A DNA stretch of 64,000 nt from Magallana gigas (GCF_963853765.1 NC_088853.1:66278001-66342000); one strand, 5' to 3'. Numbered from the stretch's first letter, positions 1,209 to 62,342 are shown. Made by a program: numbers and translations. The notes: generated by a model not told the origin, from the letters alone.

Positions 1209-1436
1209 CCCATGTCTTGTTCTCTGTCCTAAAATATATCACAATGCGATCTAACCGATATATATCTTTCAGATCAACTCGCCAAATTGCTTTAGTATCC
1301 GGTAAAGTTGCTGAACATTGACCACCGCGAAACGTCCGATCAGATTTCCGGTTATCAACTGCCTTCTCTGAACTGGAAGCGCCAGATCGCGTGGAAGACT
1401 GATATGTTGGTTTCCAGAGAGCTAGATTTTCTAGAT
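1209..1436 (-). CDS. Gene A FTP3 N-half exon (tandem acceptors at 1436 and 1430)
   Basis: LENLALWKPTYQSST...KAVDNRKSD...QCSAT...WRVDLKDIYRLDRIVIYFRTENKTW|gtaag. Confidence 0.85.
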
Positions 1437-4400
1437 CTAACGATAAAAACAAAGATGCATTATTGCATTGAACTAGAGTCTCGTGGGAATCGAAGAGCAT
1501 CCGTTCAATATACAAAACTCATAACTTTTAAGAAAAGCATAATAATTTGCCAACAAAAACATGACAATTACTGCAAAAAAACGACTGTATAGGATTATTA
1601 ATCACATATCATGTTTAATATTATTTACATGCATCTAGGATATCAGTTATTGACCCCAATTTTGTTTACAAATCGTTCAGTTCACTTTAACGTTTAAAGT
1701 AGAAAAAATATAGTACAATATTGCATGATTTAGTATAGAAAATAGCTGCATGTCTTTTACTTGGGACTCGTTTATAAACTGTTTGAAATAAATTGACCAA
1801 TCCTAAAAGATCTTACAATTTTTGCAGCTAGAGAAGCAAGGGACAGCACAATGCGGACCGTCGAATCCAGGAATTGGACAACCTGGATACAAAAAAAGGA
1901 AGGCAAAGTATCGCTAGTTTTGTATATAGAAACACACATTTGTGCGAAAAGGCTATAAATATTGTGAATGATGCTACAACAAACAAAAATCCAAACAATA
2001 ATTACCATACACTTCGACTTCACACAGAGCTGACTGGGCGTATTGACTGTAACCAGCTGGATAGCTAATGTCCGGGAGTCTTTCATTGTAATACGAGACA
2101 TATTGACCAATCACAGGGCAGCTTATATCGAATGAGAAAGGTATAGTTGACCTTGTATGGTTTGTGTCTTTGTAGCAGACGACACCCTCATTTTGATTGG
2201 TGGAGTTAGAAACTGTTAATGTAAAGCCCAGAAGAAGTCCTGTATAATTATTTTTCCCATCTGAAATTTTAGAAAAACGTGTCATTCTTACATGTTATTA
2301 TCACTGTTCTTTACGTTGTCAAGATACATTGTTACAATCCAATATAACAGAAAATGAGGATTTAAAAAAAAAAAAAGAATTACTGGCTAATTTATGAAAA
2401 ATAACGACCTGCTTTGTAAGTTCAGCTGAAAGCAATACAAATTAACCAATCAGCCATTTGAAAATTGAGTGATAACTAGAACATGATTGAATGCCCGAAA
2501 TCTACGATTCAATAACACAATGAAGATATTTGGTTAATGGAACTATAGGAATTTATTCCGACTTATAAAATGTTTGCCAAATTCTTATTTATACTCTGAT
2601 ATTATGTAAACGTTGGCAAACATCGTTCAAATTCTTTTTTTATTTAGAGCTAGTGGATTGTTATTAATGACGCTACGTTAATTCGAGTGAACCTGTGGTA
2701 AAAACTTAACAAAAGATGTGAAAAAGAAACATTTAGATTCAGTTGCAAAATTTGAATTGCATTTATCGTAGATTTTGCGTTAGTTAAATGTAAGCAGTAT
2801 TCAAATTTATATTTTTAAGTTATATCTTACATAAGACAAAATAAGCAATAAACTAATCATAACGTATGCATTACAAAAAAGAAGGCGTATATCTTAAATT
2901 TAAATGATGATTATTTGCATATAATTCATTATAAAGTCACAATTTAAAAGAAAAAATAAACGTTTAAAATACCTATCGTATTGTTGCGTGGGGGAATCAT
3001 ATGGTATATATATGAATTTGTTTAACTAACCAAAAACGCGTTAATATCAAAAATAAAATAAAACAAAATGATATCCATATACATGTAGTAAAAATCATAG
3101 TACACAAAAATCACTAACCCCATAAAAATCACTAACCCCATTTGGAAACAGAAGTCAAAGCTTGTAAGGTAAGCCTTTCAATTTTACGCCTTTGCAGGAG
3201 GTCAACTCTCCAGAGAGCGTAGTTTTGATGCTCTGATGTCACAGCGCAATGACCCGAATACAAACTCTGGTCATTCTTTTGACCATCAACAGCAGCCTTA
3301 CTTCCGGTAGTACTAAAAAATGTGGAGGACTGGAATGTCGGTTTATGTAGGGCTAGATTTCCTAGAAAACAATTGTGTAAAGTTATATTAAAATAGCTGT
3401 GGATATATAAGTGTAAAAAGTGAAATGTACACTTTCTATCAGTTGTCTATTTTCTCTAGGTATGAAAGTTAATTATGAAAAAAAAAACAAAACTTAAAGG
3501 ATGTGAGAAATAATCATTTTGAAGAGAAAAAAAAGCTCATTTGATCATGAAAAGTAAAGAAAATTACCCCGATCGTAGAATTTGCACTGTTCACCATAGT
3601 ATCCTGGGTTGCAGGCTCCAATACATTCCCCAGTTTTGGGGTTACAGTATTGACAATTATTTGGACAAGGTTCGTCACAATACGGTCCTTTGAAGCCAAG
3701 TTCGGGGCAGCCTTTTTAGGCAAGAATACAAACAAGATTACTTATATACTAAATAATTGATTAAAGGAATATCAGGTTTAGATTTTGAGATTTTATTAAA
3801 TACTAAAAAAAATTATACGCATCATTCTCCAACTTCGTAAAATGTGTAACAAATATTGTACGCAGTTTAAAGACAAAAATGTTTCACATACAAAACTGTA
3901 ACACAATTATTTTTGCAAATGTTGCATGAGATAATAGAGAAAGTTATATTGTAATGAAAGTAAACTAGACTACTCTCTATGTATATCAACTAACCAAACA
4001 CTTCGACTTCACACAGTTCAATGTATGCTTCCTTTGAATAAGTGGGCTTCTGGGTCAGGTTTCCCTCTCTCGTGTTGTAATATATCACGTACCGGCCCAC
4101 AACTTGACAAGAGATGTTCATGACGCTTTGTATGGAGCTGGCATCATTTTTGGTATCGTGAAAACAGAGGAACCCATCATCTTTGTTTGTTGTATTGGAT
4201 ACGTAAACAGAAAAACCCAGGAATCTGCTCGCATACTTGCTGGATTCTAGATCAATCAATTATAAAATTCTTAACATATTTGCACAAACTTGTGTTTAAG
4301 GTAATGACCCATACCTTATTAATAAAATCAAATACATTATTTATTAAATTTTACCCATTTGGCTGGTCCATCGGTTTTTAAAGCTAGGGCCGTAATTAAA

Positions 4401-6479
4401 AATATAACCGATTGTGGAAAATAGTGGTGTTTTTATTCAAACATTAAGAATATTAGCCTAAGCCTGAAATTTGACTTTCAGAAAATCGGTTTTGACTGAT
4501 ATCTTATGTAAAATGAACAAATGAATTTTACGAAACAATTTATCTTATACCAAACTTGCCTATTTATTAAAAAAACCCAGATAACATTGCTTACAAATGA
4601 AATGATATGATGCAAACGTTCAAAGAGAGTTTTATCTATTGCAATTTTATATGCGTACAGATTTCTCTGAAATGTTGACAGTGCTTGTTTACTTCTAAAG
4701 GCCCTTAATCAACTGTAAATAAAATTACCCAAATATATCCTCGTCTTGATCACAGAGTAAAGTGTATTTTTGGTCAAAATCATTAACATAAAATTTTTGG
4801 AAAAGATTTCCTAAGAATAATACTGTGCAAAAGGTTGTTATTTCATCACCTTTAAAAAGGTTAAGCTTATTGTAAACATAATTTGAACAAATCTTTGATT
4901 TATTTTTATTATTTTAATTGCAACAGAAGTTTTCTTTGGATATCGGTACATCTTTTTAGAAATTACCGCTACTTAGAAAACGCTGTTTACCCGATATGCT
5001 TTCTAGACAAAATCTCTATTCAACATGTTTCCTGGTTTTAAGGATTGTTCTTTTCATAAGCTATAACTCAAATTCTAAAACACACTTCTTCTTGGAAAGG
5101 GGGTTATACTTATTCTCGTTGCTTAACAAAAAGAACAGATATGATATTCTAGTAATTAAGGGTATAGAATGAAGATAGAATTGTTTAAGAATAAGGTCAA
5201 TTTTTTTCCCTCTTTTTGTGTATTTATCTTCCTTATGCACTTGAATCGATCATGGTCAGGATTTATTTTGATGATTTTGAACTTTCAAGAAAAAAGTTTA
5301 AATATTCAACTCAACCTTACAAAATAATGACATTTATACAGAAAAAGGTAATGGTCTATATTTTAAAAACGAGTACCCAATCGTGTCATGTTTGTATTGC
5401 GCTGATCAATAACAATTGATTGCAGTTGTCGAGATTGTTAAAATAAGTGTTTTAAATCAATTTCTAGGTTAGCCTGGTTAAACTAAACCTATTTATCGTT
5501 AGGTCTTCATTAGATTCCTCACGGACAAGACGATATGCCGCCTGAATTACGTCCGACGATGTTTTTGTGATTTATTGATAATTACATTCATTTGAGTGCA
5601 TACGCAATTTTATGTATCTCTTTGATCACCGTACGGGTAAACAATGTTATTAATATCTATATATGATAGGGTACCTTTAAGAGATTCTTTTTAGAACACA
5701 TTTAATACAGAGAGTAATGCTGACCATTCTTAACCACTTAANNNNNNNNNNNNNNNNNNNNNNNNNNNNNNNNNNNNNNNNNNNNNNNNNNNNNNNNNNN
5801 NNNNNNNNNNNNNNNNNNNNNNNNNNNNNNNNNNNNNNNNNNNNNNNNNNNNNNNNNNNNNNNNNNNNNNNNNNNNNNNNNNNNNNNNNNNNNNNNNNNN
5901 NNNNNNNNNNNNNNNNNNNNNNNNNNNNNNNNNNNNNNNNNNTATGTTACTACAATTGATAATAATAACAACAATGTTAACATCAGAAGACTCACTCCAC
6001 GTCTTGCCCTCTGTCCTGTAATATATCACGATATTGTGTATAACTTGAATAGACTGGAGGTCCACCATCCAAGTGGCGCCGTGTGGTGTCCCGTCAGAAA
6101 TAGCACATTGGTTACCGGCCGCCGAACGGCTAGACTTTAGATAATCTACAGCCCTTTCTGGAGGATAGATGCTAATGCTTGGTATCTGCCAGGTTGGCCT
6201 TTTGTAGGCCAGATTATCTCAAATTATAAAAATTAAAAACAATGCATCTTAAAAATAACTATTGCTGTTAAATGTAACAAATCATCTCATATTCAGAAAC
6301 CCAGAAACGTCGGTTAAGACGTAAAACCTTTATATTTTTGCCATTGAGTAATATGTTGAACATTTGACAGCGTTACACGAATGAGTGTGAATGTAAATCA
6401 AATAATACTTACAAATACAATCTGTTAAGGAGATCAATATAAGAGTCAGGAAGAAATAAACATATGTCCGTACACCCAT
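1209..6479 (-). CDS. Gene A: spliced, signal-peptide-bearing tandem F-type-lectin-like (FTP)/EGF mosaic protein, SP-FTP1-EGF-FTP2-halfEGF-FTP3(N-half); 3' end not resolved in window
   Basis: Exons with GT/AG boundaries: 6413-6479, 5996-6217, 3995-4246, 3568-3711, 3137-3361, 2006-2260, 1817-1882, 1209-1430/1436. All joins are phase 1 and give one open frame with FTP motifs (NLA..KP..Q, AVDG, WxVDL, YN.R, LCEVEV) and EGF cysteine spacing. Confidence 0.85.
1817..1882 (-). CDS. Gene A half-EGF linker exon
   Basis: cag|GCPIPGFDGPHCAVPCFSSCKN|gtaaga; 66 nt; read-through hits TAG at 1803-1805. Confidence 0.65.
2006..2260 (-). CDS. Gene A FTP2 C-half exon
   Basis: LLGFTLTVSNSTN...GQYVSYYNERLP...ALCEVEVYG; 255 nt. 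Confidence 0.9.
3137..3361 (-). CDS. Gene A FTP2 N-half exon
   Basis: NLALHKPTFQSST...AAVDGQKND...HCAVT...LWRVDLLQRRKIERL...KW; 225 nt; absent from the ORF track because there is no ATG. Confidence 0.9.
3568..3711 (-). CDS. Gene A EGF-like exon
   Basis: GCPELGFKGPYCDEPCPNNCQYCNPKTGECIGACNPGYYGEQCKFYDR; 144 nt. Confidence 0.9.
3995..4246 (-). CDS. Gene A FTP1 C-half exon
   Basis: SRFLGFSVYVSN...GRYVIYYNTREGNL...ELCEVEVFG; 252 nt. Confidence 0.9.
5742..5942. other. Assembly gap (N run)
   Basis: 201 N. Confidence 0.99.
5996..6217 (-). CDS. Gene A FTP1 N-half exon
   Basis: NLAYKRPTWQ...RAVD...NQCAIS...TWMVDLQSIQVIHNIVIYYRTEGKTW; ag/gtgag; 222 nt. Confidence 0.9.
6413..6479 (-). CDS. Gene A exon 1, signal peptide
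   Basis: MGVRTYVYFFLTLILISLTDCI followed by T|gtaagt donor. Confidence 0.75.
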
Positions 6480-8301: not shown

Positions 8302-8505
8302 TAGTGGAATCATAAGAATTCGCGGTGGCTCAATTTTGGTGGTACTCGTGGGAAACCCCACACAAGAATTTACATCATCGACGAAAACAAACTTAGAGAG
8401 TTTTCTTACTGAAAGTGAAAACCGACGCATCCACGAAATGACATCCCCAAGAATAAAAAAAATGATCCACAAAAATTGGACACCATGAATTTAAAGGATT
8501 CCAGT
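8302..8505 (+). mobile_element. Short MITE-like dispersed repeat (gtggaatcat...gattcca(c)agt termini)
   Basis: Imperfect inverted termini; related copy in opposite orientation at ~32270-32501. Confidence 0.6.
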
Positions 8506-8626
8506 TTTTATCTGAGGACTTAAGTTATATGAGCCGGGATTTATTCAATACGATAATGATGTTAACTTATGTCCTGTTAACTCTGTTCACAATAAGTCCA
8601 TTTATGATGAAGGGGTATAAGCATAC

Positions 8627-8836
8627 ACTGTAAACGTATTGTATTTGGTGCGTACGCTATTTGGCGGAAATTAGTTTTCGAACAAGTTGGCGTGGATTTG
8701 AAAAAGCGTATTCCTGAATATGACTTTTCTTATACATAGATGTATGGTATTTAGCGATGTATTTGATTTAGCGGAGGGCAACATTCCGCCAAAAGCGCTA
8801 AATAGAATACACAGCCAAATGTAGTACGTTTACAGT
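8627..8836. mobile_element. MITE with 12-bp TIR ACTGTAAACGTA
   Basis: actgtaaacgta (8627-8638) and tacgtttacagt (8825-8836). Confidence 0.7.
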
Positions 8837-8930
8837 ACGTTCTTTTTTCCGATTTTCCTAAATGTTACACCATTGGCCGAAAATTATTCATTCCGTCTTT
8901 ACATTTGCAAGAAAGTTCTTCAGGGTTTTG

Positions 8931-10149: not shown

Positions 10150-11192
10150 TGGTTTGTTTTTATTTATTTTTTTGTTCCATTTCTATTTTTCAATTAAGTG
10201 ATTATTTTCGTTTAAAAACTTTAAAAGTGTGCAAGTTTGAGTTTGCGGAAAATTAACAATAAGCTGAAGTTAAAACAGACGCTCGACAAGTATTCATGCA
10301 GGTCAGACTAAAATGTCAGCAACTCGAAACAAGTGCACCGTATCCTTTGCCTCAACTGAAGTCACTTGGTTGTTTGATTTACAGACAAAAGACAGTATCA
10401 TGAGATTGTGTTATACCACGTGATCTACATTTGATGTGCTCATTTAATTCCCATGAAAGATTGATTTTCGGAAATGGACCAATAATAATGGTGTTTTCTA
10501 ACCCATCGCCATTGCTCGGATATAGAAAATACACAAATCATTCCATAAACATCGTATACCATCGCGAATCATAAGTGATCGTATATTTATACAATTTTAA
10601 GGGAATACATTTTATTTGTATGGTATACATGCATGGAAAAGTAATTCATGAAAATAAAAAGACAAAAATGTACGATTGCAACATTCTAAAACATAGCAAC
10701 TGCAATATGTTGAATGATAAATATATATTCAAATACATTGGTCAAATTGTTTAGGTAATTGTTGATCTTTTTTTCTTATTTCAATCCCGAACATTTTCAC
10801 ACTATTACTAAAACTTTTTCAATGTGACCAAGCATGATTATGAAAATCTAATATTAAGAAAGTATTTTAAAGACAAACCTAAGCAGATTCTAGGCCAAAT
10901 TTAAATCAATCTAAAATATAGAATCAAAGCTGATTTTGGACTTTTCTAAACTACAAGTACGATGTCTCAGACGATCTAAACTGGTATATAGATTGCCATG
11001 TGCGCAGCACTTAAGATATATTTAAGAGGAATAATAATAACTTTTGATATATTTAAAAAACAGTAATTTTGAAACATTTGTGCTAAAATCGTGTTTAAAA
11101 CCCCTTAGAACCTGTGTTGCTATTGCTATTTGCAGACAGGCTATATATTCTTTATATCAATCATTTTTTACACATGTTGTACCCAACTTATA

Positions 11193-18552: not shown

Positions 18553-18690
18553 TTTTTTGACAGAAGTATCCTATCCAGCCACGACGGCAGCCATAATCAC
18601 ATGAACCACTGACATCGTTACAGCCATCACACGTGTAACTGTTGATACAAGTCTCAGAACAGTCTTGTCCAAAATATCCAACGGGGCAAA
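18553..18690 (-). CDS. Gene B EGF exon 7
   Basis: CPVGYFGQDCSETCINSYTCDGCNDVSGSCDYGCRRGWIGYFCQK; 138 nt; donor gtacat. Confidence 0.85.
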
Positions 18691-21600
18691 CTGAAATGAA
18701 CCAAATGTGTTATATAATTAGTATTAATCCCTACATACTAAGTCAATCTACTTACATGTGAAATACATGTATTATATATTTATTTTTTCTATGCTATATA
18801 TTTAATACAAATCTACACACGGGTTTTACACAAGTCTCCTTGATAATCAGCACCACACCCTGTCAAACACGTCCCATTAATATTGGAACACTGGCTGACG
18901 TCACGGCAATGTCCACATGTTTCATTGCATTCAGAACCATACCGCCATACGTCACATGCTGCGAAAAAAATATTCAATCTCATAAGGTTAATGTGTTAAG
19001 AAATGCTATTCAATTTAAATGTATATATTTTTTTTTACATTTAGACAGCAGAGTGTTTGCTTTCCAAACACAGTAGCGTCTTCTGCATAAGTTTAATAAG
19101 ATAGCAGTATTTTGTATTCAGAAAACTGATAGTGTAGATTTAAAATATCAGATTACACGGTAACATTAATATTATTATTATGATAAGGTAATGATAGCTA
19201 TGATTTTCTCCATTTAAATGTATATCATACGATAAAACACTTACATGTTTTACACAAGTCTCCTTGATAACCAGGGTTACATCCCGTCAGACACCATCCA
19301 TTGATGTTGGAACACTGGCTTACGTCACGACAATGTCCACATGTTTCTTTGCAGGAGTAGCCATACGACCCTCTGTCACAAGCTATAAATTTAACTCAGT
19401 TTAATGTATTAATACAGTTTTCTCATACAAAGTTTAAGAGTTTTTAAACCTATAAACGTAATCTTTTATACAATTTCGTGTGGTTAATTTATTAGAACGA
19501 TAATCTCATTCAAATGGCTAGGGCATATGTGAAACTCACAGAATTATTTAATCAATTCATTTTTTATTTTAAATATTGAGGCACCCAGTCCCTTTTTTTG
19601 GACACAAACAGATTGATGTAATGGCAAAAAAAACCAAAAGCCCTTACTTAAGCTTTAACCACCAAAAGAAATATACAAAAACAGCTAGTATATCATGCAC
19701 AGTTTTTTTTTTAAGTTTTGAAAGGTGTAGGTCATGAGTTTAATAGCTCTGGGTAAATAAATCGACATAACTGTCAACTTCACGCCTGAATGAATTGATA
19801 ATGACAATTAAAAGTTAAGAATATATGCAACCGATATTGAGTCGTTTGTTGCAAAGGTTTTTATCTGAATCACTACGTTCCATTTCACAACACATTAATG
19901 TTTGATATTAAACGTTACAAAATCGGCCGCCATAAAATCAATTATTAAGAGTCAATGACAAAATATATGGACGATGTAGAAGTATAAAACCTGTATAAAA
20001 AAAGATTCTAATATTTCCTTAAATACTTCAATTTAAAACAATGAGCCCCTGTTCTAACAAAATGATTTTATAATCTTATCACGTATTAAGCACTAGTTAA
20101 CGTTATCAAGAAGATCTTAAACAGCTGTTTTTATAAATATTTAAACCTACATAAAACTTTGAACCTCTTGTGGGGCCCAAAAATTGTCCAGGAGCTAATA
20201 TCTAAACAACTAAAAATCATCAGCATTCAAAATGCTTGCATATAAGTACATGTAATACCATACATTTTAAAAATAAATCAAGTAAGAATACTTGGTTCTT
20301 TATACTTGGTAAAAATTTATTTCTCCAATATGGCGCCACCCTACCCCCGAAAATCACAACTTTGACTCGAACCTGCTGAGGTTATATTTACACAGATACC
20401 GCTTCTCTTACCATTTGTTTTTTTTTTTTTTTTGAGAGGAAGATGTTTAAAAATGTATCTCTGTATAATATTATTAAATGCGACCCCCAGTTGTGGACTC
20501 ACCCTACCTCCGGGGATCATGATTTGAACAAACTTTAATCTACACTTCCAGAGGGTGCTACCCCACATTTCAGTTTTTTCAGCCAAATGGGTTTTGAGAA
20601 GAATTTTCCTTTTATATTAATATGTAAAAATTCGACCCCCATTCCGGCGCCACCCTACTCAGGGGACCATGAATTCAAGAATCCTTTCATGGGGATGCAA
20701 CCAAATAAGTTACAGCTATTCTGCCATTTTGATTTTGAAACCATTTTTGAATGATATCATATTTTCAATAAATGTTAATTATCTTCCTTTGAAAGAGGGC
20801 GCATCAAACCTGAATCTCCTTCACCTAAGACTGCTTTATACTAAGTTTGATTGAAAAATGGCCCAGTGGTTCTTGAGATGAGGTCGACACTGTAAAAAGT
20901 GCACAGACAGACGGACGGACGGACGCCGGATAAAAAGTGATAAGATTAGCTCACTTGAGCTTTCTGCTCAGGTGAGCTAAAAATCAAAAGAAAAAAACAA
21001 TGTGAAACTAATAGGAGACCAAAAAAAATTAGGTACAATTGACAAAACTGACAAAAGTTATTGACAATATATGGATTGACTTTTAGTATTAATTTTGACT
21101 GAAAGAGTCGTAAAAAGTCGATATTAACCTATAACTTCATAATGTTGACCGAGCTCACAAACGTAAGACAAGGCAGTGCTATCGCAAAATTATGTTTTAA
21201 TGACTTGTTAAGAAATCTAAGTGGCAAATATATTTTTAATGACTAACAAAGTATATAATCAATGACTACAGTCTCTCTAAAACGATATTATTTGAAAGCA
21301 TCTGGCTTTCAGCCTTGGTTACGCTCTGGAAACAGTCACACTAAAAACAAGCGGCCCATGGGGCCACATCGCTCACCTGAGCAACAATGGGCGTACAAAA
21401 GATATTGTGCCATATGGTCCCTCGGTAGAAAAACAAAAAATGAATATTGTAAAGTATTCGAATTTTACACTTATTTTTGTATACATGTAATCTTTGACAT
21501 TGTACCTTCATGAAATACTATTTTTTACCAGAATAAGAAAATCCTACGCAAGATATAAAACTAAACATTTGGTAGAGGTATACTGTTAGTTGTTAACTTC

Positions 21601-23876: not shown

Positions 23877-24587
23877 GGACAGACAGACAGACAGACGGAC
23901 AAAATGTGATCAGAATAGCTCACTTTAGCTTTCAGCTCGGGTGAGCTAAAAACGATATTTTTCCATTGGCTTTCAGCCGGACTTGTGTTCATCAGAAACA
24001 CATTTCAGCCTTGGTTACGCTCTGCGAACAGTCACACTAAAAAAAAACCGATATTTTTCCATTCAAAGCATCTGGCTTTCAGCCGGACTTGTGTTCATCA
24101 GAAACATATCTTTAAGTTTTGTATTTAAGTGACTATTTGACTACAACAAAGACATTAATAATAACTCAAGATGAAACTATGAGGAGTCAATGTTTCACGC
24201 AAAGGCTAGCATAGAAGGAAGGGGGGGGGGGGTTGCTGTGAAGTGTACTTGCCAATAGTGCGAGTAATGTGTAGTTCCTATTGCGCTAAACACAACACGT
24301 CTATTGCATTTAAATGAACATAACAAAACTAATTAATATGTGTGTATGTTCATTACACTTACCAGTCTTACACAGGTTCCCCTGGAAACCAGCATTACAT
24401 CCAGTTAGACATGTGCCATTGTTGTAGGAACACTGCTTAACGTCACGGCAGTGTCCACAAATCTCTTTGCAGTCAGCACCATAATTTTCCTCTTCACAAA
24501 CTATCGATAAATATCAATTTTTGTATTCAAGATGATGAGACACCGTCGTATTGTTACTGATTATACTAATTTTTGCTGTTTGTTTAA

Positions 24588-24669: not shown

Positions 24670-26344
24670 CATTTCTGAAATGGAATTTGAAAGTTATGGC
24701 ACGCAAACCCATTCTGTGTAAATTCGTAATACAAAGAACACGTACAGTTTTAAAATAACTTTTCACAGTTATGATATCCCAATAGTCTGAGAATGTCACA
24801 AAGATGCATAATTTCGGATTAGTAATGACGCGATGTCTTTTACTTAATGATAAACACAAAATGATAGAGATATCTTACAGGTAATGATATACACATGTAT
24901 AATTTAATTAGGTTAAAAATATAACGTTGAGGAATTGATCTATATATTAAACAGTATGTTGAAAATTCTTTCCTGAAAATAGATTTTATGAAAAAAATGC
25001 ATATGCATATAGGTACTTCAGTTTATGAGAACCTGAAATAAAACCATTTATAAAAATAATTTAGTTCTCATACAGTATCAACAAGATAAAAAAAAATGGA
25101 GACTATATAACTATTTTTTTCAATACGTTTAAGCAAACAGCATATTTTGGTCAATAAGTTCTACTTACGGGTTATACACATGTCCCCTTGATAACCAGCA
25201 CCACAACCAGTCAAACATGTCCCATTGGTATTGGAACAGTGGTTTAAATCACGACAGTGCCCACAAGTTTCATTGCATTCAGAACCATATGACCCTTTGT
25301 CACAGTCTAAACATTAGAAAAAATTTTGTTAAAACGATATGTTAACATAAAACATTAAAATTTCAATTATTTTTTGTAACAACCCTGGACAGTGAAATTG
25401 GAAGTTGTGAAACTTTAATTTTAAAGACGTCTTTCTATGTGAGGAATTTGAAACGTCGTTAACTGTTTATTTAGTAATCGTAGTCGGATACTGGTGATAT
25501 AAATTTAAAAACCACTGCATTTTGACGTGTAAAGTCGGTTCGCACTAAAAGATATGATTGTTTGGATGTGCATGTATTATAGAGCAAATTCAGAAAAAAA
25601 TGACAAATTATAAACACCGTTTTAAAGAAAAAAAATAATGACAAACATAAGTAAGCATGTACAAGATTGTTATCTTAGTTACTTTTTGTAAATGATCAGT
25701 AAAAAAAATACAGTATTGCTTTTTTATATATTTCATATACTGACACGCTTGAACAAAAAGGGGGGGGGGGGAGGGGGGAGGGGGGGCACCTCTGTGGGAT
25801 GTACACTGGAGATTTACCCACCACTGATTCTCATATCAAAATGATAGGGTTATCATATAATTGGGCTAAAGTGACATGATAAAAAGACATTATAACAGAA
25901 TCAAACCAGGTCTCATATGATCCTGATATGAGAATTACATGAATAACATGATCGTTTACCTAATTATGATAAATCTAAGATGATAACCCTTTAATATGGC
26001 AAAATGTGAGAATTTAATGATTAATTATGTGTGCATATCAAGGATTTACAATTGTAAAATATGCAAAAAATGCTAACTGGACTTAGTGACATTTAAAATT
26101 GCGAAAAATAAGGTTTATTAATGGGCGTATATCTTTTAATTGTAGGAAATGTCATTGTCTTAACTGCTACTTTATGTAATTGCAATAATCAAAAGTTTAT
26201 ATCCACAATGTACGAAGTCGTTTTAATAGGAAGACGTCATTTCATTTTCTTTGATCTGCGTAGGATAATAATGAGGCTATCATTTTTACAGACTAAATAC
26301 ATAGTTAGCGTTAGTTTGTCTATTGTTATTCGTTTAAAGATAGT

Positions 26345-26426: not shown

Positions 26427-29400
26427 AAATAAGGTATCATTTTTGGATGTATATCGGGATATAAATACGGGTTGGTCACGTGGCCAAATCCCCGAAGGGC
26501 TTTATGGAAGATTTGATCACGTACCAACCCATATTTATATCCTGATATACATCCAAAATAATACCTTTTTTTTTTTTTTAAATAAGAGCTATTCTTATAT
26601 TTGTTGCAAATTATGACAATAACAATGCTCCATACTTTCTCTTTTGTGATGACCTAGAAAGCCGCTTAGATAAAGATGAAGTTGCAAAAAAATAGAACAT
26701 CAATGTTGCAAGTATTTGATTATCATGAACAATAAATATGAGACTTCTTTTGACAGTTTGATTATTTTATGATATGGTTCTCATATGAAGTAACTGTCAT
26801 ATTATTCAATTCATATCAAAATCCCCTTATAGGGATTATAAAGTTCTTATATACAGAATTCTTATGTGATTTCAATATCATTCTGATATGAAAACACTTA
26901 ATATCAATATGATATGTGGCGAAATTGCCTATGAAGTTGACAATAGTGCATCTTATGTGGAGTTCCTGCTACGCTCTCCATATCAGTCTACTACTCCTTA
27001 AAACACATCTGTTTACTTAATGTGTTTATCTATCTTCACACTTACTAGTTTTACACAAGTCTCCTTTAAAACCAGCATCACACCCAGTTAAGCAAGTCCC
27101 ATTGTTGATGGAGCACTGGTTTACTTCACGGCAGTGTCCACATGTGTCTTTGCAACCAGCACCATATGTTCCCCTTTCACAAGCTATCAATACAAACCAA
27201 TTTTATATTGAACATAATCAACCTGACCTTTTTTTTATTTTACAAATTCACTGTATTCTTACCCAGACTGTAAAAACAAATACAAAGATATATACTATGA
27301 TGTAGTTATGTTCATTAGACTGTAATTGTAGCTAAACGACATTTTAGTCCATTTTTCCGTAGAATTTCAGATCTGTAGTCTTACTTATTTCACATCGGTG
27401 ACCTTTGTATCCAGGTTTACAGCCCTGGCAGGTGCCCATCTCTATGTGACAGTACTGACAGTTAACGTCTGGACAGGGAACGGAACAGTTGGACCCAAAA
27501 TAACCCGTAGCAGGACACCCTTCAATTTATACACCGGTATTGAGTTAGGTATGCTTCTAAACAGTTCTTAATTTCTTCATGTGTAAAATGGCATAGTTTG
27601 CTTATGCGTAACTATGCATGCGTTTCATCATGGAAATTTAATAATGCATATGCATCGGGTACTAATTATCTATGTTGATAAGGTTCATGTTCAACTTTTA
27701 TGTATCAATGAGTGAGGACAATATTGGGAGAAACACAATCATCATATGTAAATGGCATCATTGTCAAATTTTATGTACGATAAAATTGTTTGAAATAATA
27801 GTAATTGTGGCATGAAAATAAACACGCTAATATCAATCGAAAACACCATACACCAGTCACATACTAAAGTTAAGATCAATATTAAAGATGTTGTATACTA
27901 TGTTTTAATTGCACATATTGAATTGAAGATAAGGTACACTCACCATACACCTCCACTTCACAGAGGTCAGTGACAACAGTGTCAGAGTAACCGTCAGGGT
28001 AGGTAACTCCTGGTAGTCTCTCGTTGTAGTAGATGACGTACTGTCCATGTACAGGACAGGAGGTGTTGAAGACAGCAGGTATGGTGTCTGGTGTAAAGTT
28101 GTCGTCCTTGTAACACAGTGTTCCCTGTAGTCTGTCTGTTGTATTGGAGACGTACACAGAGAATCCAAGGAAATACTTAGTGAGCCCATTAGAGGGACCT
28201 GTATCATAATAATGAGAAAATTAATATGAAGGTCATAAGTAGTTAGATAAAAATAGAGAACCGATAAATGATTCTCAACATGTAATGGTCAACAAATATA
28301 TATAGATGACACTAAATGTATTAACGCACAAATAAAGCGGGCATGTAGACATAATACATGTCAAATAAATAGTGGTGATGTCAGTACATAGTAGATAACA
28401 ATGATTTACAACAGTATATATCTATGTAGATAAGTATTTTGTTAAAGGGCCAACAATGAAACAAAAATAAACCGTATATACAAACAAAAAAGTTTCGTTA
28501 GTGTATTCCTGCCAATAATACAAAAGTTCACTTGCTGCCCCTACACCCTACTGTAGAAGGGATTCACCTGATAGTTCTGTCTAGTTGAAAAGTGTGCTGT
28601 CGCCTAAACTTACGGCAGCGTTAGTGAATACCTGAACGTTTGCAAGTGTGTGAGCGGGGGGGGGGGGGGGGGGGGGTGACAGAGTTCCTTTCACCTGTGT
28701 TGAGTTCTCGTCAGATCCTGGATATGGAGTGGACAGACACAGTCTCTATCTTGTTTTACAGGGCATGAAGGATTCTCGATAAATGAAACTTCAACTAAAG
28801 GTTTCTTTCTCGTGCCAACACCGACCACGACGCTTGGCCTAATGTAATGACAAACAGTTATGATTTGTCTCTGGATCTTTAATTTATTTAATACCATAAA
28901 TATTATTTTGAAAATCTCAAATCTGTTCACTCTTTTAAACCTCTACTGTAGAAGGGGTTTACCAGATAGTTCTGTCTAGTTGAAAAGTGTGCTGTCGCCT
29001 AAACTTATGGTAGCGTTAGTGAATGCCTGAACGTTTGCAAGTGTGTGAGCGGAAGGGGGGGGGTTACAGAGTTCCTTTCACCCGTGTTGACACAGTTCGT
29101 GTTGAGTTGTCGTCAGATCCTGGTTAAGGAGTGGGCAGACACAATATCTATCTTTTTTACAGGGCATTAAGGATTCACGATTTAAAAAAATCACATCTCA
29201 AAATAAAACGCATATTTCAACTAAAGGTTTCCTTATCGTGCCAACACCGACCGCGACGCTTGGCCCTATGTAATGACACACAGTCACGATTTGTCTCTGG
29301 AGCTTTCATTTATTTAATACTTTGTGCAACCATACATTTTATAATGTTAATCTCAAATATGTTCACTCTTTTAATAAAAAATAAGCAGTATTACAAAGTT

Positions 29401-42636: not shown

Positions 42637-42638
42637 AA

Positions 42639-44365: not shown

Positions 44366-44367
44366 AA

Positions 44368-45693: not shown

Positions 45694-45695
45694 TG

Positions 45696-53583: not shown

Positions 53584-54045
53584 TGTAACGCAGCAGTAAA
53601 AATTGTTCATCTACAGGCATCATTAAACGCTAATCTTGTTAGTGTATTTAGACATTTTGTTGACGGAGAGATACAGATATCACTGTGTATGTGAGACTCC
53701 TTTCGTCTGCTCTAAGAGAAGTATTTGTACTTGTACTTATCCCAGGTGATTATTTTTTTTTATGATCCACTGAAAAATTTCAAAATTCGGTTAACATTGC
53801 GTTGTGTCTAAATTATTCAAAACTTTCACAATAATATGTTTTGTTATTGATTTGCAATAAAATGTGATTATTAGCATCGTGTTTATGTTTCATATACTTC
53901 AAAAACACATTATATCATCGTTATAAGTGCTGATAAAAAAAAGAGAAAAAAACTTTTAAAAAATAAATTCTGACGGCAGTGAAATTAGTAATAGTGATTT
54001 ATCAGAGAGTGCAAATTTGTGAGAGCCGGCATTCTTATTAAAACT

Positions 54046-54109
54046 ATGATGCCGTTAACTTGTGTCTTGCTTACTCTGGTTGTATTTATGCCTAATCTAA
54101 TGACGGGAT
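54046..54109 (+). CDS. Gene C exon 1, signal peptide
   Basis: MMPLTCVLLTLVVFMPNLMTG + T|gtaagt. Confidence 0.8.
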
Positions 54110-57100
54110 GTAAGTACACGAATTACTAACTTGTTTTGCAATGCTTTACTTTTGATCGCACGAATGTTCATTTTTTCTTTACATTTGTAAACAAGTGATT
54201 TTTTTCATTTGTTTAAATTAAGGTGTTTTTTCTTTAAAAAACTGTTATAAAATACTGTCTTTTTCTATGTTTACCATATTAAACAGTATGTCTTAAATTA
54301 CCTCATAACACTTATGAACGACAATATCTTTTTAGAACATATATTAAAAAATCCTTAAGTGTAGTTGTTGTATTTTTTTCCTCGTTAAATAAAAAAAATG
54401 GTAAAATGATATATTTTGTGAGTGTTAAATTTGACTGGTACTGTTCTTATATCAAGATTTGTTCGTTATCATTTAACAAAATAATTAACAATATATGTCT
54501 AATATACATTATGCTCTAATTAAACCAAATCTTAGCACATTTAAGATATTACTGTTAAATAAAAATTGTGAATGTGATTTTTTTTTTACTTATGAACCCA
54601 AAGATAACCTAGCGTATAAAAAACCGACATGGCAGACACTTGACAAGTATTCGTCGGACAAGGCAGTGGATGGACTGTATACTAATCTATCAGCAAATGG
54701 AAACCAGTGCGCCGTATCTTTTGCCTCGTCTGAAGTCACGTGGTTAGTTGATTTAGAGACAATAAACAGTATCAGTAAGATTGTATTGTACCACGTGACA
54801 GAGGGATCTACATTTGGTAAGCTCATTTCACTTTTATAAAGTGTTTCTTTCTTTCTACTTACGAGTCTTTTTTTTAACAAATATTAAAGAAAGCACACGC
54901 AACCAACTGGATAATTCATAAATAAACATTAAATCTGTACTTTAAAAAATATTACTACAATGATTTTCTTTTAAGTTTTGTTATGATATCGATTTTGGAA
55001 ACAGTGAAAGGTATCCATCTAACACAGATTTGGGCGTTTTTGTGGTCCAGAAAAAATCTTAATGACTTCATTCCCATGTTTTTATGATTCAGAAAACTTT
55101 TGAGGGATTGAGTGACACACAGAAACAGCATATAAAACACATTAAATTGATAATTTCATCTTTTTTATTCCTGTTTTTGTATTTGCTACTTTCTAATAGT
55201 TTGCATAATGCTTCAATGGATAAGAATAACTTGGGTTTTTTTCAAATTTTACGTTTGATATTTTCAGCTATGCTACTACGTTTTACCAAAAATTGAAGGT
55301 TAAGCAACTATCTGAATTATTTCAAAATTTCATAAAGATTAACCAGTTTCCGTCATTGTTTTCTGTATTACTTTGATTGTTTTGAACATCAAATGTAAGA
55401 AACAATGTTTAACGCAATGTCTTTTTCATTTGGACGGGGAATATTAAGAATTATGTCATTAAAATTTATTTTTACATCGATGAATACATAAAAATCTATT
55501 TTCTTTTAAATCTTCAATATCAGTGGTTATTGCTGTTCTTTAAAAGATAATATAAGATGATTCCATATTGTACATTGACACCTACATTCNNNNNNNNNNN
55601 NNNNNNNNNNNNNNNNNNNNNNNNNNNNNNNNNNNNNNNNNNNNNNNNNNNNNNNNNNNNNNNNNNNNNNNNNNNNNNNNNNNNNNNNNNNNNNNNNNNN
55701 NNNNNNNNNNNNNNNNNNNNNNNGCATAAAAAGGAGTTGATATATATATATTGAATGGTGTTTTGTTAAATTCAGAGCGATTGGTATGCTGTTACTTTTT
55801 TCATAATATGTGAATAGTTGGTGTAATATGTATATACAAATAAATAGTAACCTAAGTTTTATTTAAAGTATTAGATTTTACTTTTTGGGTATCAATGAGA
55901 TATATTATCCTGTTTTATACACACAAAGCTGACAGCGTCTATGCAAGCAGATTCCTCGGTTTCTCCGTATATGTATCAAACTCAACCAACAAGAAAGATG
56001 GAGTCCTGTGTTATCACGACACCAACTACACGGTATCAACCATTACGTCTAGGATAGCCATTGAGTGTATTTCCCAAGGCCGCTATGTGATATTCTACAA
56101 CACAAGAGAAGGGAACTTGTCATTGAAAATTGGCTATTCTGATAAAGTGGAGATTAGTTTATGTGAAGTTGAAGTATATGGTAATATTTATTATCTTTAT
56201 ATTTTTTTCTTATATTATCCTTCATCTTTATGACTAAAAAGGTATATCTTACTTCTGTTTCTATCTTTTGCGAAAACAAAACAAAATTTAAAAAAAAATC
56301 AGAACTGTGTCTTTTTATAGTAATTAATATATAAAAGAATACAAAAATGTCATCATTTCATGAGATATCAAGCAATCATAATATGATCATATTCTTTTAA
56401 AAATCATACATGTAATTTCAATTCATGTGTAGCTAATATGACACATTTTGTAAATACTGGACGATTCTATATTTATGTATGCATCATCTCTCTGTACTGT
56501 CTTTGTTTTATTTTATAACAACAAGGATGTCCTTTGGGATTCTATGGCGGGGATTGCTTAAAGACTTGCCCAGTTAATTGTCACCATTGTAACTACGAAT
56601 CTGGAAAATGTCTCGGAGGCTGTCGCCGTGGTTTTTCCGGACACTTTTGTAATTCTTATGAACGAAGTGAGTTAGTTTAGTTGTTTTTTAATGAATTCTT
56701 TTTGAACTGCTATAAGCCAGCTTTCATTCACGTGAGAAAAATGTTCTTGAGACTTTCGTCGATGCATCAATTTTCTCGCCCCGAATCACTTATTGTCTTA
56801 TGGTTGATTTAGCAAAACAGATATTCGAAATGCTTGTCGCAAAAATAAGTCGCAGAGTACCATTAATGTCTGGTAAATCGCAAATGAATGTCGTCCTGTA
56901 TAAAAGTTGTTGGGTTACCGAAATTGAAATAGCATTGTAAAATAATTAATTTTTGTTTGAAATGTACCATCTTACTAAAAATGGCAGAAAAATAGTTCGT
57001 ATCGTGCAAAAAAGTTGTCTAGGTGAAGTAACTAACGTAAAAATAAACGTATTAGTCTGCCATACATGACGTTTGAAATTTGTGAAATCATACCATTTAA

Positions 57101-60100
57101 GCCATCACTTGGCCATTTTAATAAACAATTAATGGCTGATAATTAAATTGTAACGAATTAACGTAATAGCTTCCAAATTTACAAATATGAGATAAGTTGA
57201 AATAGTTTAATTCTTAAAAAGCGCAGACAGACCAATCAATTTTATATTCGAATAAACTTGTAAGCTGTTGATTTTATTCCCTATACAAAAATTAAAATTG
57301 AAAAACGATGTTTTTACGACTGTTGACTTCTATAATGCCGTTTGAAACCCAGTGACTTTTATTCATGATAAACAACATTTTTACATTCTTTAGATATTAT
57401 AAAAGTGAAATATTCTAATTTATATGAATAGTGTCCTAAGGTTCATATCAATAACACATCGTTATGTTTTTCCTATTCAGTTAATTTGGCATTACATCGC
57501 CCGACTTTTCAACTACATACACTGTTTGACGGACAACCAAGTTCCAGACTCGTTGATGGTAAAAAGAGTGATCTGAGTATATACAACGGTCAATGCACCT
57601 CTACTAAAAACGGCCAAACGTTTGTAATGTGGAGGGTGGATTTAGAAAAACTTCGTCGCATTGAACGTATTGTTGTTTACTCCAGAACGGATAACAGAAT
57701 ATGGGGTGAGATAAATAAATCTGTTATATTTCTCTTTGCATTAAATGTATAAATCAAATATACACATAAACAAATGAATATTCATATATTATTATTTTGC
57801 TTAAAATTAAATGATTTAAATATATTGTTTTGACAGATGGAGATAACCAATTTTCAAAAAGATTACTAGGATTTTCAATTATTGTTTCGAACACCACTAA
57901 CCACAAAGATGGCGTCATTTGTTTCCACGACCAAATATACAACAAGAATACAATACCATCGGTGGTGGATATTCTCTGTTCCGTCGTTGGACGCTATGTT
58001 ATATATTACAATGAGAGACTACCAGGAGTCACATACTATGCAGAACATAGTCAATATGCTTTTGCTGACCTCTGCGAAGTAGAAGTTTACGGTACCTACT
58101 GATGATATCAATAAAACAAAAAAAGGTGCATACTGTCTTTACATTTAAACTAGATAATTTGTAATGTTTATTTTCAGGTTGTCCTTTAGTCCAGAGTAGG
58201 TTTCAAGACGAGGCCTGCAGACTCATGTGTCTCGAAATGTGTAGGAAGGGTGAGTATATACGCTTGCTTTATTACAATTATTCTTTCTGTAGTTGTAAAT
58301 AAAATACTTTTAAGTGTAATATATCTTGAAAAAGATATTTGCATTATAAATAAAAACAAATCATTCAAATACACAAAAACAGATAAAACGAACTTTAAAA
58401 AATTAAAGTATTTTGGAATCATTTAAGTTTGTTTGGCCAAATTGTGTGGATTCCTTGAAAATTACAAATTTGGAAAGGAGATTATTTCTTGTTTTATCTT
58501 TGACCAACAAAATAAAAAATGATTGTATAACCCTACAAATTAATTCAACATGAGCCATAAAATCCGAGCCATCAGTTTAATATTTAAATATTATACTGGA
58601 AAGGGACATTGATGGCAATATAACAACATCAGTTTGTGAAAAACGTGATGACTTAAAATATATATCAATATACCTTCATCACCTGTATATGGAGATTTCG
58701 TATCTAAGTTACTGCGATACGCAAAGACATGCTCCTGGTATGAATAGTTTTTACATGAGGCAATCTACTGTCAAACAGGTTGATGAAAAAAGATCTATCA
58801 ACAGTCTCGATTGAATTCATTACTTTATATAACCAACGCTTAGTAATACAAACAATGCAAACACATATAAAATAAGCTGGTGTTTTGGAATGTCTTGATC
58901 GCCTTAGAAGGATATCAAAAATACTCCACAGACTGTAACAAATTATTCAGCAGGATCAACATACTATACACTGTCCTAAGTTTTTTCTTCCACCATTGTT
59001 CGGTTGATATTTCGATAATAATAATTACTTTTGTGTTCAGACTAGGTTCATCAACTGATATAAAAATGTCCAGATTATGTCTTGAAACGTCCCTTCGTTC
59101 GCTTCAGGGTTCAATATCGAACCCGAATGATATCTTTGATATTGTGCGAGGTATTTAGTGTGAGTTCCAAATTGTGAAACGATTGAAACATATCCAATTA
59201 CAAATCTTCGTAAGAAATTTGTTTTCGTTCATGAGAGTTTATTTGTCAATAAAGATACACGTATCTTGAATTTTTACTTTTATTGATTTCAACTGTATTT
59301 TTTTTCATAAGTATGTGCATTTTGATTAAACAATTATAAAAAAATGAGGGAAGAAAAACATGGGACATACTAAAGACGAACAGTTATTTTGCTACACGTA
59401 TGTTTTTTGTATTGATCGAGTTATTCCCATATGACAATATTTAAAACGTGGCATGGTTAACCACACGTCTGAGGAGGTACATGAAATAGACCATATCAAA
59501 AGTAGCATTTGATGTTGAAGCCAATCAGCTATTATTCAAGACCAGTTAAGACGACATTTTGATTCATCATATTATTTGCATATTTAAATGATCAACAAAA
59601 CGTTGTAACATCTTCGTGCAAGGTAAAAATGATCCGATGAAATTGGAGCACTAATACCCAACGGCAATTAATAAATGTCCGAAAGTACATTTACATCATT
59701 TTATCTGGAAAAAAAAAATATTTTAGAGCACCAGTCCAGTTTAGCAACTGGATTCACTAAGGAGAAGTTCCTCATTAATTAACCTATTAAATTGAAACAT
59801 TCGTGTACTTTCAATGTATGTAGAAAAACAGTTGGGTTATAGTTTAGGGGATTCATGAAGTTATACCGTGGTCATTTAAAAACAAATCATTAACACTCTC
59901 TATTCTGCAAAAAAGAATCAAAGGTTTTGTTTTTAATTTAAGATCTAGAAAATCTCAGTTACAAGAAAAGAACTTGGCAGTCTGCGACATATTCCTCTTC
60001 GGGAACAAGCGATAAAGCAGTTGATGGACGATATACGTCACGCCATTACTCAAGTGGACAGTGTGCTATATCAAAACCATCAACACAAATAACATGGTGG

Positions 60101-62342
60101 GTTAATCTGGGGAAAATATACACGATAGACCATGTCGTAATTTACTTCAGGACCGATAACGTACAGTGGGGTAATGCATATATAATTTATCTCTTTAATG
60201 TACAGTTTTGTTCTTAAAAATTGCACATGAATAATGGCGAAAACGTCATTATAATTAAGCCATTTTGTGTCACCAGAAAATGTGTAGTTGTTTATGCGGT
60301 TTCTTTTAATTATAATAAATTTGGTTTTATCTATTCAAAGAAAAAATAATTCCGATATTATATTACGTTTGTTTGTTATAGGAATAAACAATGGCTATAC
60401 GGCAGTTTTCCTAGGATTTTATTTGTACATTTCGAACACCACCAATCGTCATGACGGAATCCTATGTCACCACGATACAAATTACACAAGAGAAACCATT
60501 CCTGATCACGTGTCTATTGATTGTCCTTGCCATGGACAATACGTCATTTTTTTACAATGAACGTCTGCCCGGAGTTACCTACCCTTCCGGGTATTCAAAC
60601 ATGGCTTATGGTGACCTCTGTGAAGTTGAGGTTTATGGTAAATATTTTTTTTTTTGTGTCAAAAAATGAAGTGTGATTTAAGTGTTGAACATGTCATATT
60701 GTTTTTTTCTTTACCAAGGTTGTCCTAATCCTGTGGTCGAAGTTCCTCAGTGTTCTAAACCGTGTCCATCAAACTGTGAAGAATGTTACCCAGACACGGG
60801 AATATGTATGAAGTGTAAACTTGGTTTTGAAGGCTATGCTTGTGAAAGAGGTAACTATATCTTTGCAATTCAAGATGCAATTACATTTAACCTATATAAA
60901 ATATATTCATTTTATTTGACAAAAGCCATATTCTGTTCAAAGAAAGGCAGTTTAAGGTTATTTGAGGCTATACTTTTAATTTTCATCTCAAGGAACATCA
61001 CGCATTTACTCCTTTATTTTTGTTACAATTAAGAACATGACACTTTCTTTTAGAAGAATTTTTATCTAAAAATAAGTCATGTTTGATAGGACGTTTTGGA
61101 ATCAACATACAACTATCTTATTTCAGCCTGTCAAGCGGTGACCGACGTAAAAGTATCGTTACCAGTTACAATCGCCGGATCAGCATACGAAGCATTGTTT
61201 TCAAGCAAGGGATATTCTTTTCCAGAACATGGACACCACAATATGTCTCTTTTTTTGTCATTATCTGAACAGTCGACAAACCTTGTAAGCGTGTCCTTCA
61301 CAATCCATGGGGCATCGGTAGTCAGTGTGTACTTGTTGGATGGAATAGGCTCTCTAATCAGGATGGTTAGTATTCATAAAATTTGAATATGTGAAAACAA
61401 TCAATCAACATACAATCAACTAAAAGTAAAAAAACAAAGTTGAGAATAACGTAGACATTCTTATGTTAGAATAAAAGATTCAAGGATTTTTTTTTTGATA
61501 TATTTTGACGGGATCTAAGAAAACAAAAATTAACAAATATAAGACAGGAAAAAAAGTGCTATAAGAACCAAAAATGCTGCCTTAAAACATAAAAAAACAA
61601 ATACAAAACGAATATCAACAATTGTTCGATGTATATTTCATCTTTCATTTGGGGCTGAAAAGCATTGATGTAATTCAAATGATACTCTACCTATGTTTAA
61701 AATAATATATGTGATTTAATGTATTAACAAGTCTACGTAAATATGAATTATCTGAGGTGTTTTAATTATCTTTTTTACTTAGTATGTCGACGAGTCTATG
61801 GAATCTGAGGATGTAAATGTCACAGTTGTAAACAACATCATTGCTGAAGTTCATTCTATTATAATAGAAGTTGTGTATTACCATCAACTTGTCATCTCGA
61901 AATTGAGGCTGCCGGAGTGTAAATGCTTCAACTATATCAATAGCACGGTAAGTTTTATAGAATATATTGTAGTTGACATTTTTAATTGCTTTCATTTAAA
62001 AAATATATAATATGAATGAAAATATTTCTTTTTGCAAATGTACTTTCATAGATATTATGAATTTGAGATGACTTACTATATTAACTTCTTTTTTTTTTCT
62101 TTTTTTTTTTCGTTTAGATTTAGTGAGTTTAATTATAAGAATGTATTTAACTTTTCAAGAAGTAGTCAAGTTGTCCTAAGAATGAAATAACAATCATTAA
62201 GTCTCAGTATTATGCATCAAAACTAGGTTAAACAAAAGTGTTAAATAACATATTTCCTACCATTATTTCCTTTCATTTTTCAGACATTTTAACCAGTGGT
62301 GTGCATTTCAGCGAGAAATTATTAACAGAATTGATTTGTTAA
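54046..62342 (+). CDS. Gene C: probably secreted tandem FTP/EGF mosaic protein, SP-FTP1-EGF-FTP2-halfEGF-FTP3-EGF-unrecognised beta-rich domain; apparent +1 frameshift in exon 9
   Basis: Exons 54046-54109, 54604-54816, 55929-56180, 56526-56666, 57481-57705, 57837-58091, 58178-58249, 59943/59949-60170, 60382-60637, 60719-60850, 61127-61365, 61783-61918/61947, 62284-62292/62342. Confidence 0.85.
54604..54816 (+). CDS. Gene C FTP1 N-half exon
   Basis: NLAYKKPTWQ...KAVDGLYT...NQCAVS...TWLVDLETINSISKIVLY; 213 nt. Confidence 0.9.
55590..55723. other. Assembly gap (N run)
   Basis: 134 N. Confidence 0.99.
55929..56180 (+). CDS. Gene C FTP1 C-half exon
   Basis: YASRFLGFSVYVSN...GRYVIFYNTREGNL...SLCEVEVYG; 252 nt. 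Confidence 0.9.
56526..56666 (+). CDS. Gene C EGF exon 1
   Basis: GCPLGFYGGDCLKTCPVNCHHCNYESGKCLGGCRRGFSGHFCNSYER; 141 nt. Confidence 0.9.
57481..57705 (+). CDS. Gene C FTP2 N-half exon
   Basis: NLALHRPTFQ...VDGKKSDLS...QCTST...MWRVDLEKLRRIERIVVYSRTDNRIW; 225 nt. Confidence 0.9.
57837..58091 (+). CDS. Gene C FTP2 C-half exon
   Basis: KRLLGFSIIVSNTTN...GRYVIYYNERLPGVTY...DLCEVEVYG; 255 nt. Confidence 0.9.
58178..58249 (+). CDS. Gene C half-EGF linker exon
   Basis: ttttcag|GCPLVQSRFQDEACRLMCLEMCRK|gtgagt; 72 nt. Confidence 0.75.
59943..60170 (+). CDS. Gene C FTP3 N-half exon (tandem acceptors at 59943 and 59949)
   Basis: NLSYKKRTWQSATY...KAVDGRYT...QCAIS...TWWVNLGKIYTIDHVVIYFRTDNVQW|gtaat. 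Confidence 0.88.
60382..60637 (+). CDS. Gene C FTP3 C-half exon, +1 frameshift in the T7 run at 60547-60553
   Basis: Frame 1 gives FLGFYLYISNTTN...HGQYVIF, then the next frame gives YNERLPGVTYPSGYS...DLCEVEVYG; 256 nt versus 255 in paralogous exons. Confidence 0.85.
60719..60850 (+). CDS. Gene C EGF exon 3
   Basis: GCPNPVVEVPQCSKPCPSNCEECYPDTGICMKCKLGFEGYACER; 132 nt. Confidence 0.88.
61127..61365 (+). CDS. Gene C C-terminal domain exon 1 (unrecognised)
   Basis: tttcag|ACQAVTDVKVSLPVTIAG...LVSVSFTIHGASVVSVYLLDGIGSLIRM|gttagt; phase 1 in, phase 0 out. Confidence 0.7.
61783..61947 (+). CDS. Gene C C-terminal domain exon 2 (unrecognised)
   Basis: cttag|YVDESMESEDVNVTVVNNIIAEVHSIIIEVVYYHQLVISKLRLPEC..; phase 0 in matches the previous donor; possible donors gtaaat (after 61918) or gtaagt (after 61947). 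Confidence 0.65.
62284..62342 (+). CDS. Gene C putative terminal exon
   Basis: tttttcag| gives (Y)ILTSGVHFSEKLLTELIC* in phase 1 or TF* in phase 0. Confidence 0.35.

Follow-up and report, generated by a model that had tools for sequence, protein, structure and literature searches.

The window, by which we mean the whole 64,000-nucleotide stretch analysed (chromosome 1 of Magallana gigas, = Crassostrea gigas, the Pacific oyster, 66278001-66342000), contains three genes of a family whose products combine F-type-lectin-fold (FTP) domains with EGF-like modules. The genes were located by tblastn using the open frames of the window, and searches were run with single exons or with database proteins (P0160, P0164, P0270 and others). 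Gene A lies on the minus strand, between about 6217 and 1209, and continues past the left edge of the window into L006, which holds the FTP3 C-half and another EGF exon. Gene B, of the MEGF10/draper type, runs on the minus strand from 30002 downward, and gene C occupies the plus strand between 54001 and about 61956. The architecture of genes A and C is alike, consisting of a signal peptide, FTP1, an EGF module, FTP2, a mini exon, FTP3, a further EGF module and a C-terminal domain, and gene B has a single FTP followed by EGF-like exons. The family is very large, with 447 matches at E<=1e-20 and dozens of copies on chromosome 1. The genes of the window correspond to annotated RefSeq loci.

The exons of gene A are listed below; the N- and C-half exons of FTP1 are abbreviated F1a and F1b, and those of the other FTPs likewise.

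5996..6217, minus strand: FTP1 N-half exon, 222 nt, phase 1-1; donor at 5996 used in P0160
5742..5942, no strand: assembly gap in the FTP1 intron (F1a/F1b), spliced across in frame by P0160 with split codon AAA = Lys
3995..4246, minus strand: FTP1 C-half exon, 252 nt; 83/83 residues as in P0160
3568..3711, minus strand: EGF-like exon, 144 nt, 8 Cys; P0160 agrees
3137..3361, minus strand: FTP2 N-half exon, 225 nt; P0160 agrees
2006..2260, minus strand: FTP2 C-half exon, 255 nt; P0160 agrees
1817..1882, minus strand: mini exon, 66 nt, half-EGF-like, 4 Cys; P0160 agrees
1209..1436, minus strand: FTP3 N-half exon, 228 nt; the alternative AG at 1430, 6 nt downstream, would give 222 nt

The NCBI model P0160, from this assembly and 679 aa long, reproduced the six gene A junctions exactly, split codons included. 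The exon peptides were 100% identical to it, with K, G, G, D, G and Y as the split-codon residues between exons, and its comparison with the C. angulata orthologue P0002 gave 99%. For gene A only one annotated product is found at NCBI. The borders of gene B were set from sequence, canonical sites and alignment to paralogues only:

29775..30002, minus strand: FTP N-half exon, 228 nt
27944..28198, minus strand: FTP C-half exon, 255 nt
27385..27519, minus strand: first EGF-like exon, 135 nt
27046..27183, minus strand: EGF-like exon, 138 nt
25169..25306, minus strand: EGF-like exon, 138 nt
24363..24500, minus strand: EGF-like exon, 138 nt
19245..19382, minus strand: EGF-like exon, 138 nt
18821..18958, minus strand: EGF-like exon, 138 nt
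18553..18690, minus strand: sixth 138-nt EGF-like exon, more divergent, borders set by eye

For gene C, both database proteins and RNA were available. The C. angulata orthologue P0164 reproduces F1a through F2b, plus F3a, split codons included, and the models P0269-P0271 span the exons for the signal peptide and the C-terminus together with the mini exon of 72 nt. The RNA consisted of Logan contigs from four public runs of three studies, aligned to positions 54700-60699 of the window (gene C only).

54001..54109, plus strand: signal-peptide exon, start approximate, phase 1 end; P0270 residues 1-36
54604..54816, plus strand: FTP1 N-half exon, 213 nt; P0164, RNA
55590..55723, no strand: assembly gap in the FTP1 intron (F1a/F1b), bridged by an RNA contig of run X3 (record 16)
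55929..56180, plus strand: FTP1 C-half exon, 252 nt; P0164, RNA
56526..56666, plus strand: EGF-like exon E1, 141 nt; P0164, RNA
57481..57705, plus strand: FTP2 N-half exon, 225 nt; P0164, RNA (joint in 4/4 runs)
57837..58091, plus strand: FTP2 C-half exon, 255 nt; P0164, RNA
58178..58249, plus strand: mini exon, 72 nt; orthologue models, RNA
59943..60170, plus strand: FTP3 N-half exon, 228 nt; P0164, RNA
60382..60637, plus strand: FTP3 C-half exon, 256 nt (255+1); extra T leads to a stop at 60558-60560
60719..60850, plus strand: EGF-like exon E2, 132 nt; RNA loose end, weak PF00053 match

The RNA contigs joined these exons as follows:

54816 -> 55929, plus strand: F1a-F1b, GT..AG, across the assembly gap
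56180 -> 56526, plus strand: F1b-E1, GT..AG
56666 -> 57481, plus strand: E1-F2a, GT..AG
57705 -> 57837, plus strand: F2a-F2b, GT..AG
58091 -> 58178, plus strand: F2b-mini exon, GT..AG
58249 -> 59943, plus strand: mini exon-F3a, GT..AG
60170 -> 60382, plus strand: F3a-F3b, GT..AG

At the F3b-E2 junction, an RNA contig has a loose end past 60637 that corresponds to the window from 60721 onward. The genes are transcribed, and their exons are spliced in linear order. Near-identical paralogues, such as the copy at C1:65963793, may have contributed some of the RNA contigs. One further RNA joint, 58028 -> 60615, might have been an FTP2b-FTP3b hybrid but was dismissed as such: its ends are TC..GA, 40 foreign letters separate its two sides, and only 22 letters match on one of them. 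Because of these ends and foreign letters it was assigned to the exon of a paralogue.

Two irregularities of the assembly could be placed with respect to these exons. Both assembly gaps are intronic, within the FTP1-internal introns of genes A and C, and the flanking exons are continuous and in frame in the transcript; since P0160 and the RNA contig splice across them in frame, the gaps leave the exon assignments untouched. The extra base of the gene C FTP3 C-half exon is the seventh T in the run 60547-60553, which has six T in five paralogous copies, one of them otherwise identical to gene C across 280 bases. Gene C as assembled is shortened by this one-base insertion in the T run, and the NCBI model P0274 terminates at the resulting stop.

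All 25 internal exons were bordered by AG and GT and had phase 1 at either end, at candidate sites in conserved frames; being paralogous copies, they represent about four independent exon types. The lengths and phase 1-1 ends proposed in the sequence-only reading were all reproduced from the AG/GT sites, with agreement from P0160, P0164 and RNA for genes A and C. Module exons of class 1-1 (the Patthy rule) are a textbook signature of exon shuffling, as they allow in-frame duplication, insertion and skipping. The genes of the window resemble that class in having EGF-like and other extracellular modules between phase-1 introns, and differ from it in that one domain, the FTP, is split into two symmetric 1-1 exons. 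The caveat attached to the earlier reading, that such symmetry is common in extracellular modules, is correct as the default.

The intron within the FTP splits the codon right after a conserved Trp, seven residues past the motif Arg. It interrupts the same codon in phase 1 in all seven domains of the window and in one C. virginica relative, whose N-half exon (237 nt, phase 1-1) ends after the same Trp as the oyster-window copies; at that locus, adjacent exon pieces were joined to test junction candidates. The Y-R-T-x-N-x-x-W of the oyster family aligned in profile alignments to N-R-T-D-A-E-T-Q of 2J1R and to N-R-G-D of the eel lectin AAA, and therefore the split codon sits where canonical F-lectins have their second basic residue. 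The loop at this point is longer in the oyster proteins than in canonical F-lectins and is followed by a conserved R-F-L-G-F. In an AF2 model of gene A FTP3 (P0160:338-500, pLDDT 96.8), built on 72 family domains, the junction residue is residue 78, located in a 20-residue loop (71-90) between strands 65-70 and 91-95. Both the profile alignments and the model bear out the proposal that the intron falls after R-x-D/E...W in a loop.

The AF2 model adopts an F-lectin fold, with 1K12, 2J22, 3CQO and 3LEI as best PDB matches (TM 0.70-0.74, E ~1e-11). Full products scored 60.3 (P0160), 47.2 (P0274) and 68.1 bits (P0270) against PF22633, for a cut-off of 27.8; single N-half exons scored slightly below the cut-off. 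A profile of N-halves matched 3CQO (FBP32) at 1e-11, 2J1R (pneumococcal SpX) at 9e-10, and eel AAA. Neither single C-half exons nor a profile built from five of them matched a solved structure; the C-half is placed only via full-domain profiles and the AF2 model. The fucose motif (His ... Arg-x-Asp-x4-Arg/Lys) was found complete in no copy: the His is absent from all seven N-halves (I, V, A, V, V, S and I in its place), and the first Arg of the motif is present in four and missing from three. At the split codon the residue is Lys in gene A FTP1 and Asp or Ala in the other copies read at the junction. The fold is that of an F-lectin, and canonical fucose binding is not predicted; these substitutions make the "lectin pocket" of the earlier reading doubtful.

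The EGF-like exons encode modules about 45 residues long with an 8-Cys laminin/MEGF pattern. This pattern was found in the gene A EGF-like exon (A-E1), in E1 and E2 of gene C and, for gene B, in the first five of its six 138-nt exons; in the sixth, the Cys pattern was assigned by eye. Single EGF-like exons gave no match or sub-threshold matches in Pfam (gene C E2 reached 17.8 bits for PF00053 against a cut-off of 21), and paralogues bear precomputed PF00053/PF23301 matches. The repeated 46-residue, 8-Cys EGF-like exons of gene B resemble those of the MEGF10/Draper/CED-1 receptors, and the relatives nearest to it in the database go by the names MEGF10/11 or draper-like, which are pipeline names only. 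Unlike those receptors, gene B has an N-terminal F-lectin-fold domain where the EMI domain would be. With the fish F-lectins (eel AAA, 1K12; striped bass FBP32, 3CQO) the family shares the fold and an alignable N-half motif, whereas the fish proteins retain the His/Arg/Arg triad; in FBP32 the intron of the domain is at a different place (PMC5712786).

A further parallel is offered by the sperm bindin of oysters, whose F-lectin repeats are each interrupted by a mid-domain intron; recombination takes place in that intron, and the number of repeats is alternatively spliced (PMC5712786, drawing on Moy et al. 2008, Moy & Vacquier 2008 and Springer et al. 2008). C. gigas bindin belongs to the same species group and resembles the genes of the window in its F-lectin domain, its mid-domain intron, the tandem repeats in one gene and the presence of some copies without the His-Arg-Arg triad. 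It differs in being a single-copy sperm protein without EGF modules. Moreover, recombination and variable repeat number were shown experimentally for bindin, whereas linear splicing is what was seen for the genes of the window.

As every internal exon is symmetric, the in-frame skippability of any of them, as stated in the sequence-only reading, follows arithmetically, and skips of EGF exons, mini exons and one N-half are annotated in relatives. Among the annotated isoforms of the family, some lack EGF exons (46, 45 or 33 residues long), and a 24-residue mini exon is skipped in isoforms of LOC105334073 and LOC105340139. Isoform X3 of C. virginica LOC144624229 omits exactly the first N-half exon (237 nt), and in one M. 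gigas isoform an alternative first exon is spliced onto a C-half. Because such N-half-skipping and alternative-start isoforms are annotated, half-domain exons are at times used separately, which speaks against the ordinary-family explanation given below. HMMs of both halves run over 347 family proteins detected N-C pairs in order in most of them, the exceptions being mostly 5'-truncated models, old GLEAN predictions and single Gnomon models. The GLEAN models with odd orders of halves (K1QTX8, which reads N-C-C-C, and K1RB57) were set aside as unreliable predictions.

Two more active roles for this layout were weighed. One of them is combinatorial splicing, by which N-halves would be joined to the C-halves of other FTPs, or exons freely skipped, to yield many chimeras per gene. 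The uniform phase 1-1 would keep all such products in frame, the EGF and mini exon cassettes of paralogues and the C. virginica N-half skip are annotated cases of alternative exon use, and alternative splicing of repeat number has been reported for oyster bindin (PMC5712786). Against it, non-adjacent junctions were absent from the gene C contigs of the four runs (window 54700-60699), a type of contig that loses rare variants, and an N-half joined to a foreign C-half was present in none of the annotated family isoforms examined, gene A having its single NCBI product. The contigs demonstrate that the linear form is present, not that other forms are absent. In addition, the N-half-skipped isoform yields an orphan C-half rather than a chimera, and the incomplete fucose triad of all copies also weighs against this alternative. 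The splicing of an N-half to a different C-half, as proposed earlier, was thus encountered neither in the gene C contigs nor in these isoforms, and we regard combinatorial splicing as extremely unlikely. Dscam1 offers a comparison. In that gene, half-Ig alternative exons lie in mutually exclusive arrays, and the idea of swapping half a binding domain by splicing is alike; the window genes differ in that neither arrays of alternative exons nor such junctions were seen in them.

The other is a mixing over generations similar to that of bindin, in which recombination or gene conversion within the mid-domain intron would reshuffle halves and diversify the binding face in populations. The precedent in oyster sperm bindin (PMC5712786), the many near-identical copies in the cluster and the uneven divergence of some pairs speak for it. 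Such pairs had identities of 1.00 (N) and 0.93 (C), 0.82 and 0.65, or 0.55 and 0.87, the last in MEGF10-like genes, and in the MEGF10-like P0152 the C-halves are near-identical although the first N-half diverges. Uneven divergence could also arise if the N-half evolves faster, and across 209 domains the pairwise identities of N- and C-halves co-vary overall (r = 0.65), far more tightly in close pairs. Maximum-likelihood trees of eight paralogue types sorted N- and C-halves each by domain position (F1/F2/F3) with as few label changes as possible, and an F2 clade for the C-halves was not rejected by the AU test (p = 0.42). The within-position discordance between gene C FTP2 and the LOC105323786 type (the 0.82/0.65 pair) was not significant, the alternative sister groupings not being rejected either (p-AU 0.26 and 0.09), so that congruence was rejected in none of these tests. 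From the sorting by position and the AU tests, the halves appear to have kept their partners since the three-FTP architecture arose. The earlier proposal of half-domain exchange by crossover is not supported by these trees, and we consider mixing of this kind unlikely.

Very probably, the genes of the window belong instead to an ordinary modular family, whose phase-1 exons were inherited by duplication and are spliced linearly. According to this ordinary-family explanation, they would belong, all three, to a large oyster family that grew by tandem duplication and encodes putative secreted or membrane proteins, built from FTP domains and laminin/MEGF-type EGF-like modules. Each module would have spread on phase 1-1 exons by exon duplication and shuffling, the FTP on two such exons. 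The intron within the FTP is probably an old feature of the family, as suggested by its presence at the same codon in seven copies, including the divergent gene B, and in the C. virginica relative. The uniform phase would then be a record of family growth that lets entire EGF or mini exons be skipped in frame now and then, and probably not a device for making chimeric lectin pockets.

The analysis provides exact exon maps of three genes, proves the gaps to be intronic, locates the gene C frameshift and reveals that the canonical fucose triad is lacking. Lectin-like recognition genes have expanded enormously in oysters, and bindin sets a precedent for recombined F-lectin halves. A far-reaching extension of that precedent would be that a cluster of well over 100 FTP/EGF genes uses its mid-domain intron as bindin does, with recombination or rare splicing giving each oyster an individual chimeric repertoire for non-self or gamete recognition. 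We hold this to be very improbable; if it were true that this far larger FTP/EGF family recombines its halves, it would constitute a new source of recognition diversity in invertebrates.

An in-frame omission of half of an F-type-lectin-like (FTP) domain, which is encoded by an N-half and a C-half exon with an intron between them, was found in Crassostrea virginica, where isoform X3 of LOC144624229 lacks the following exon:

L013 (the genomic locus of LOC144624229) 2029-2265: N-half exon, 237 nt, phase 1-1.

In this isoform the signal exon is spliced straight to the C-half exon, and the C-half is thereby orphaned. Uneven divergence of the two halves was apparent in P0152 and P0179, MEGF10-/draper-like paralogues encoded on the same chromosome, in which the FTP C-halves are 87–89% identical inside one protein and the first N-half is just 55–59% identical to the remaining N-halves of the protein. 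This imbalance could reflect conversion limited to the half-domain, duplication units with their ends in the mid-domain intron, or an N-half that evolves faster. In P0006 and P0003, proteins of the LOC105323786 type, the first N-half stops about 20 residues early, past W-L-V-D-L, and is followed directly by the C-half; the strand bearing the first Arg of the fucose-binding motif is therefore missing in those models. In the window itself, an isolated FTP N-half-like fragment is located at 10307-10444 on the plus strand. It matches FTP1a of gene C at 53% across 49 residues, has no partner C-half nearby and is probably a relic exon.

The T run at 60547-60553 in gene C consists of seven residues, and of six in 5 paralogous copies. 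The extra T shifts the frame into a stop codon at 60558-60560, at which the NCBI model of this gene (P0274, 270 aa) terminates. RNA contigs covering the run carry 1 or 2 indels with respect to the window, located somewhere along the contig. The C-terminal exons are:

61126-61365 and 61783-61956, plus strand: gene C C-terminal exons, around 140 residues, with no Pfam family assigned.

Between genes B and C, a GC-rich block (45%) on the minus strand at 41500-47950 contains long, stop-interrupted ORFs, with a gag zinc-knuckle-like CxxCxxxxHxxxxC and reverse-transcriptase/RNase H-like stretches, and looks like a retrotransposon. The segments 35861-36665 and 38726-39530, offset by about 2.9 kb and nearly identical in sequence, have the same ORFs (e.g. 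MFIYIEQTETTGGEE...) and are a local tandem duplication or repeat element.

Copies elsewhere in the genome were found for part of gene A:

200-1400: gene A FTP3 intron and N-half exon.

For positions ~6-780 within it, at least 40 copies (64–72% identity) are scattered over many chromosomes, and a repeat element therefore lies within the FTP3 intron. The stretch also has 94–98% identical copies on chromosome 1 (C1:65843157, 66114171 and 66199455), which shows recent copying of gene A by segmental duplication.
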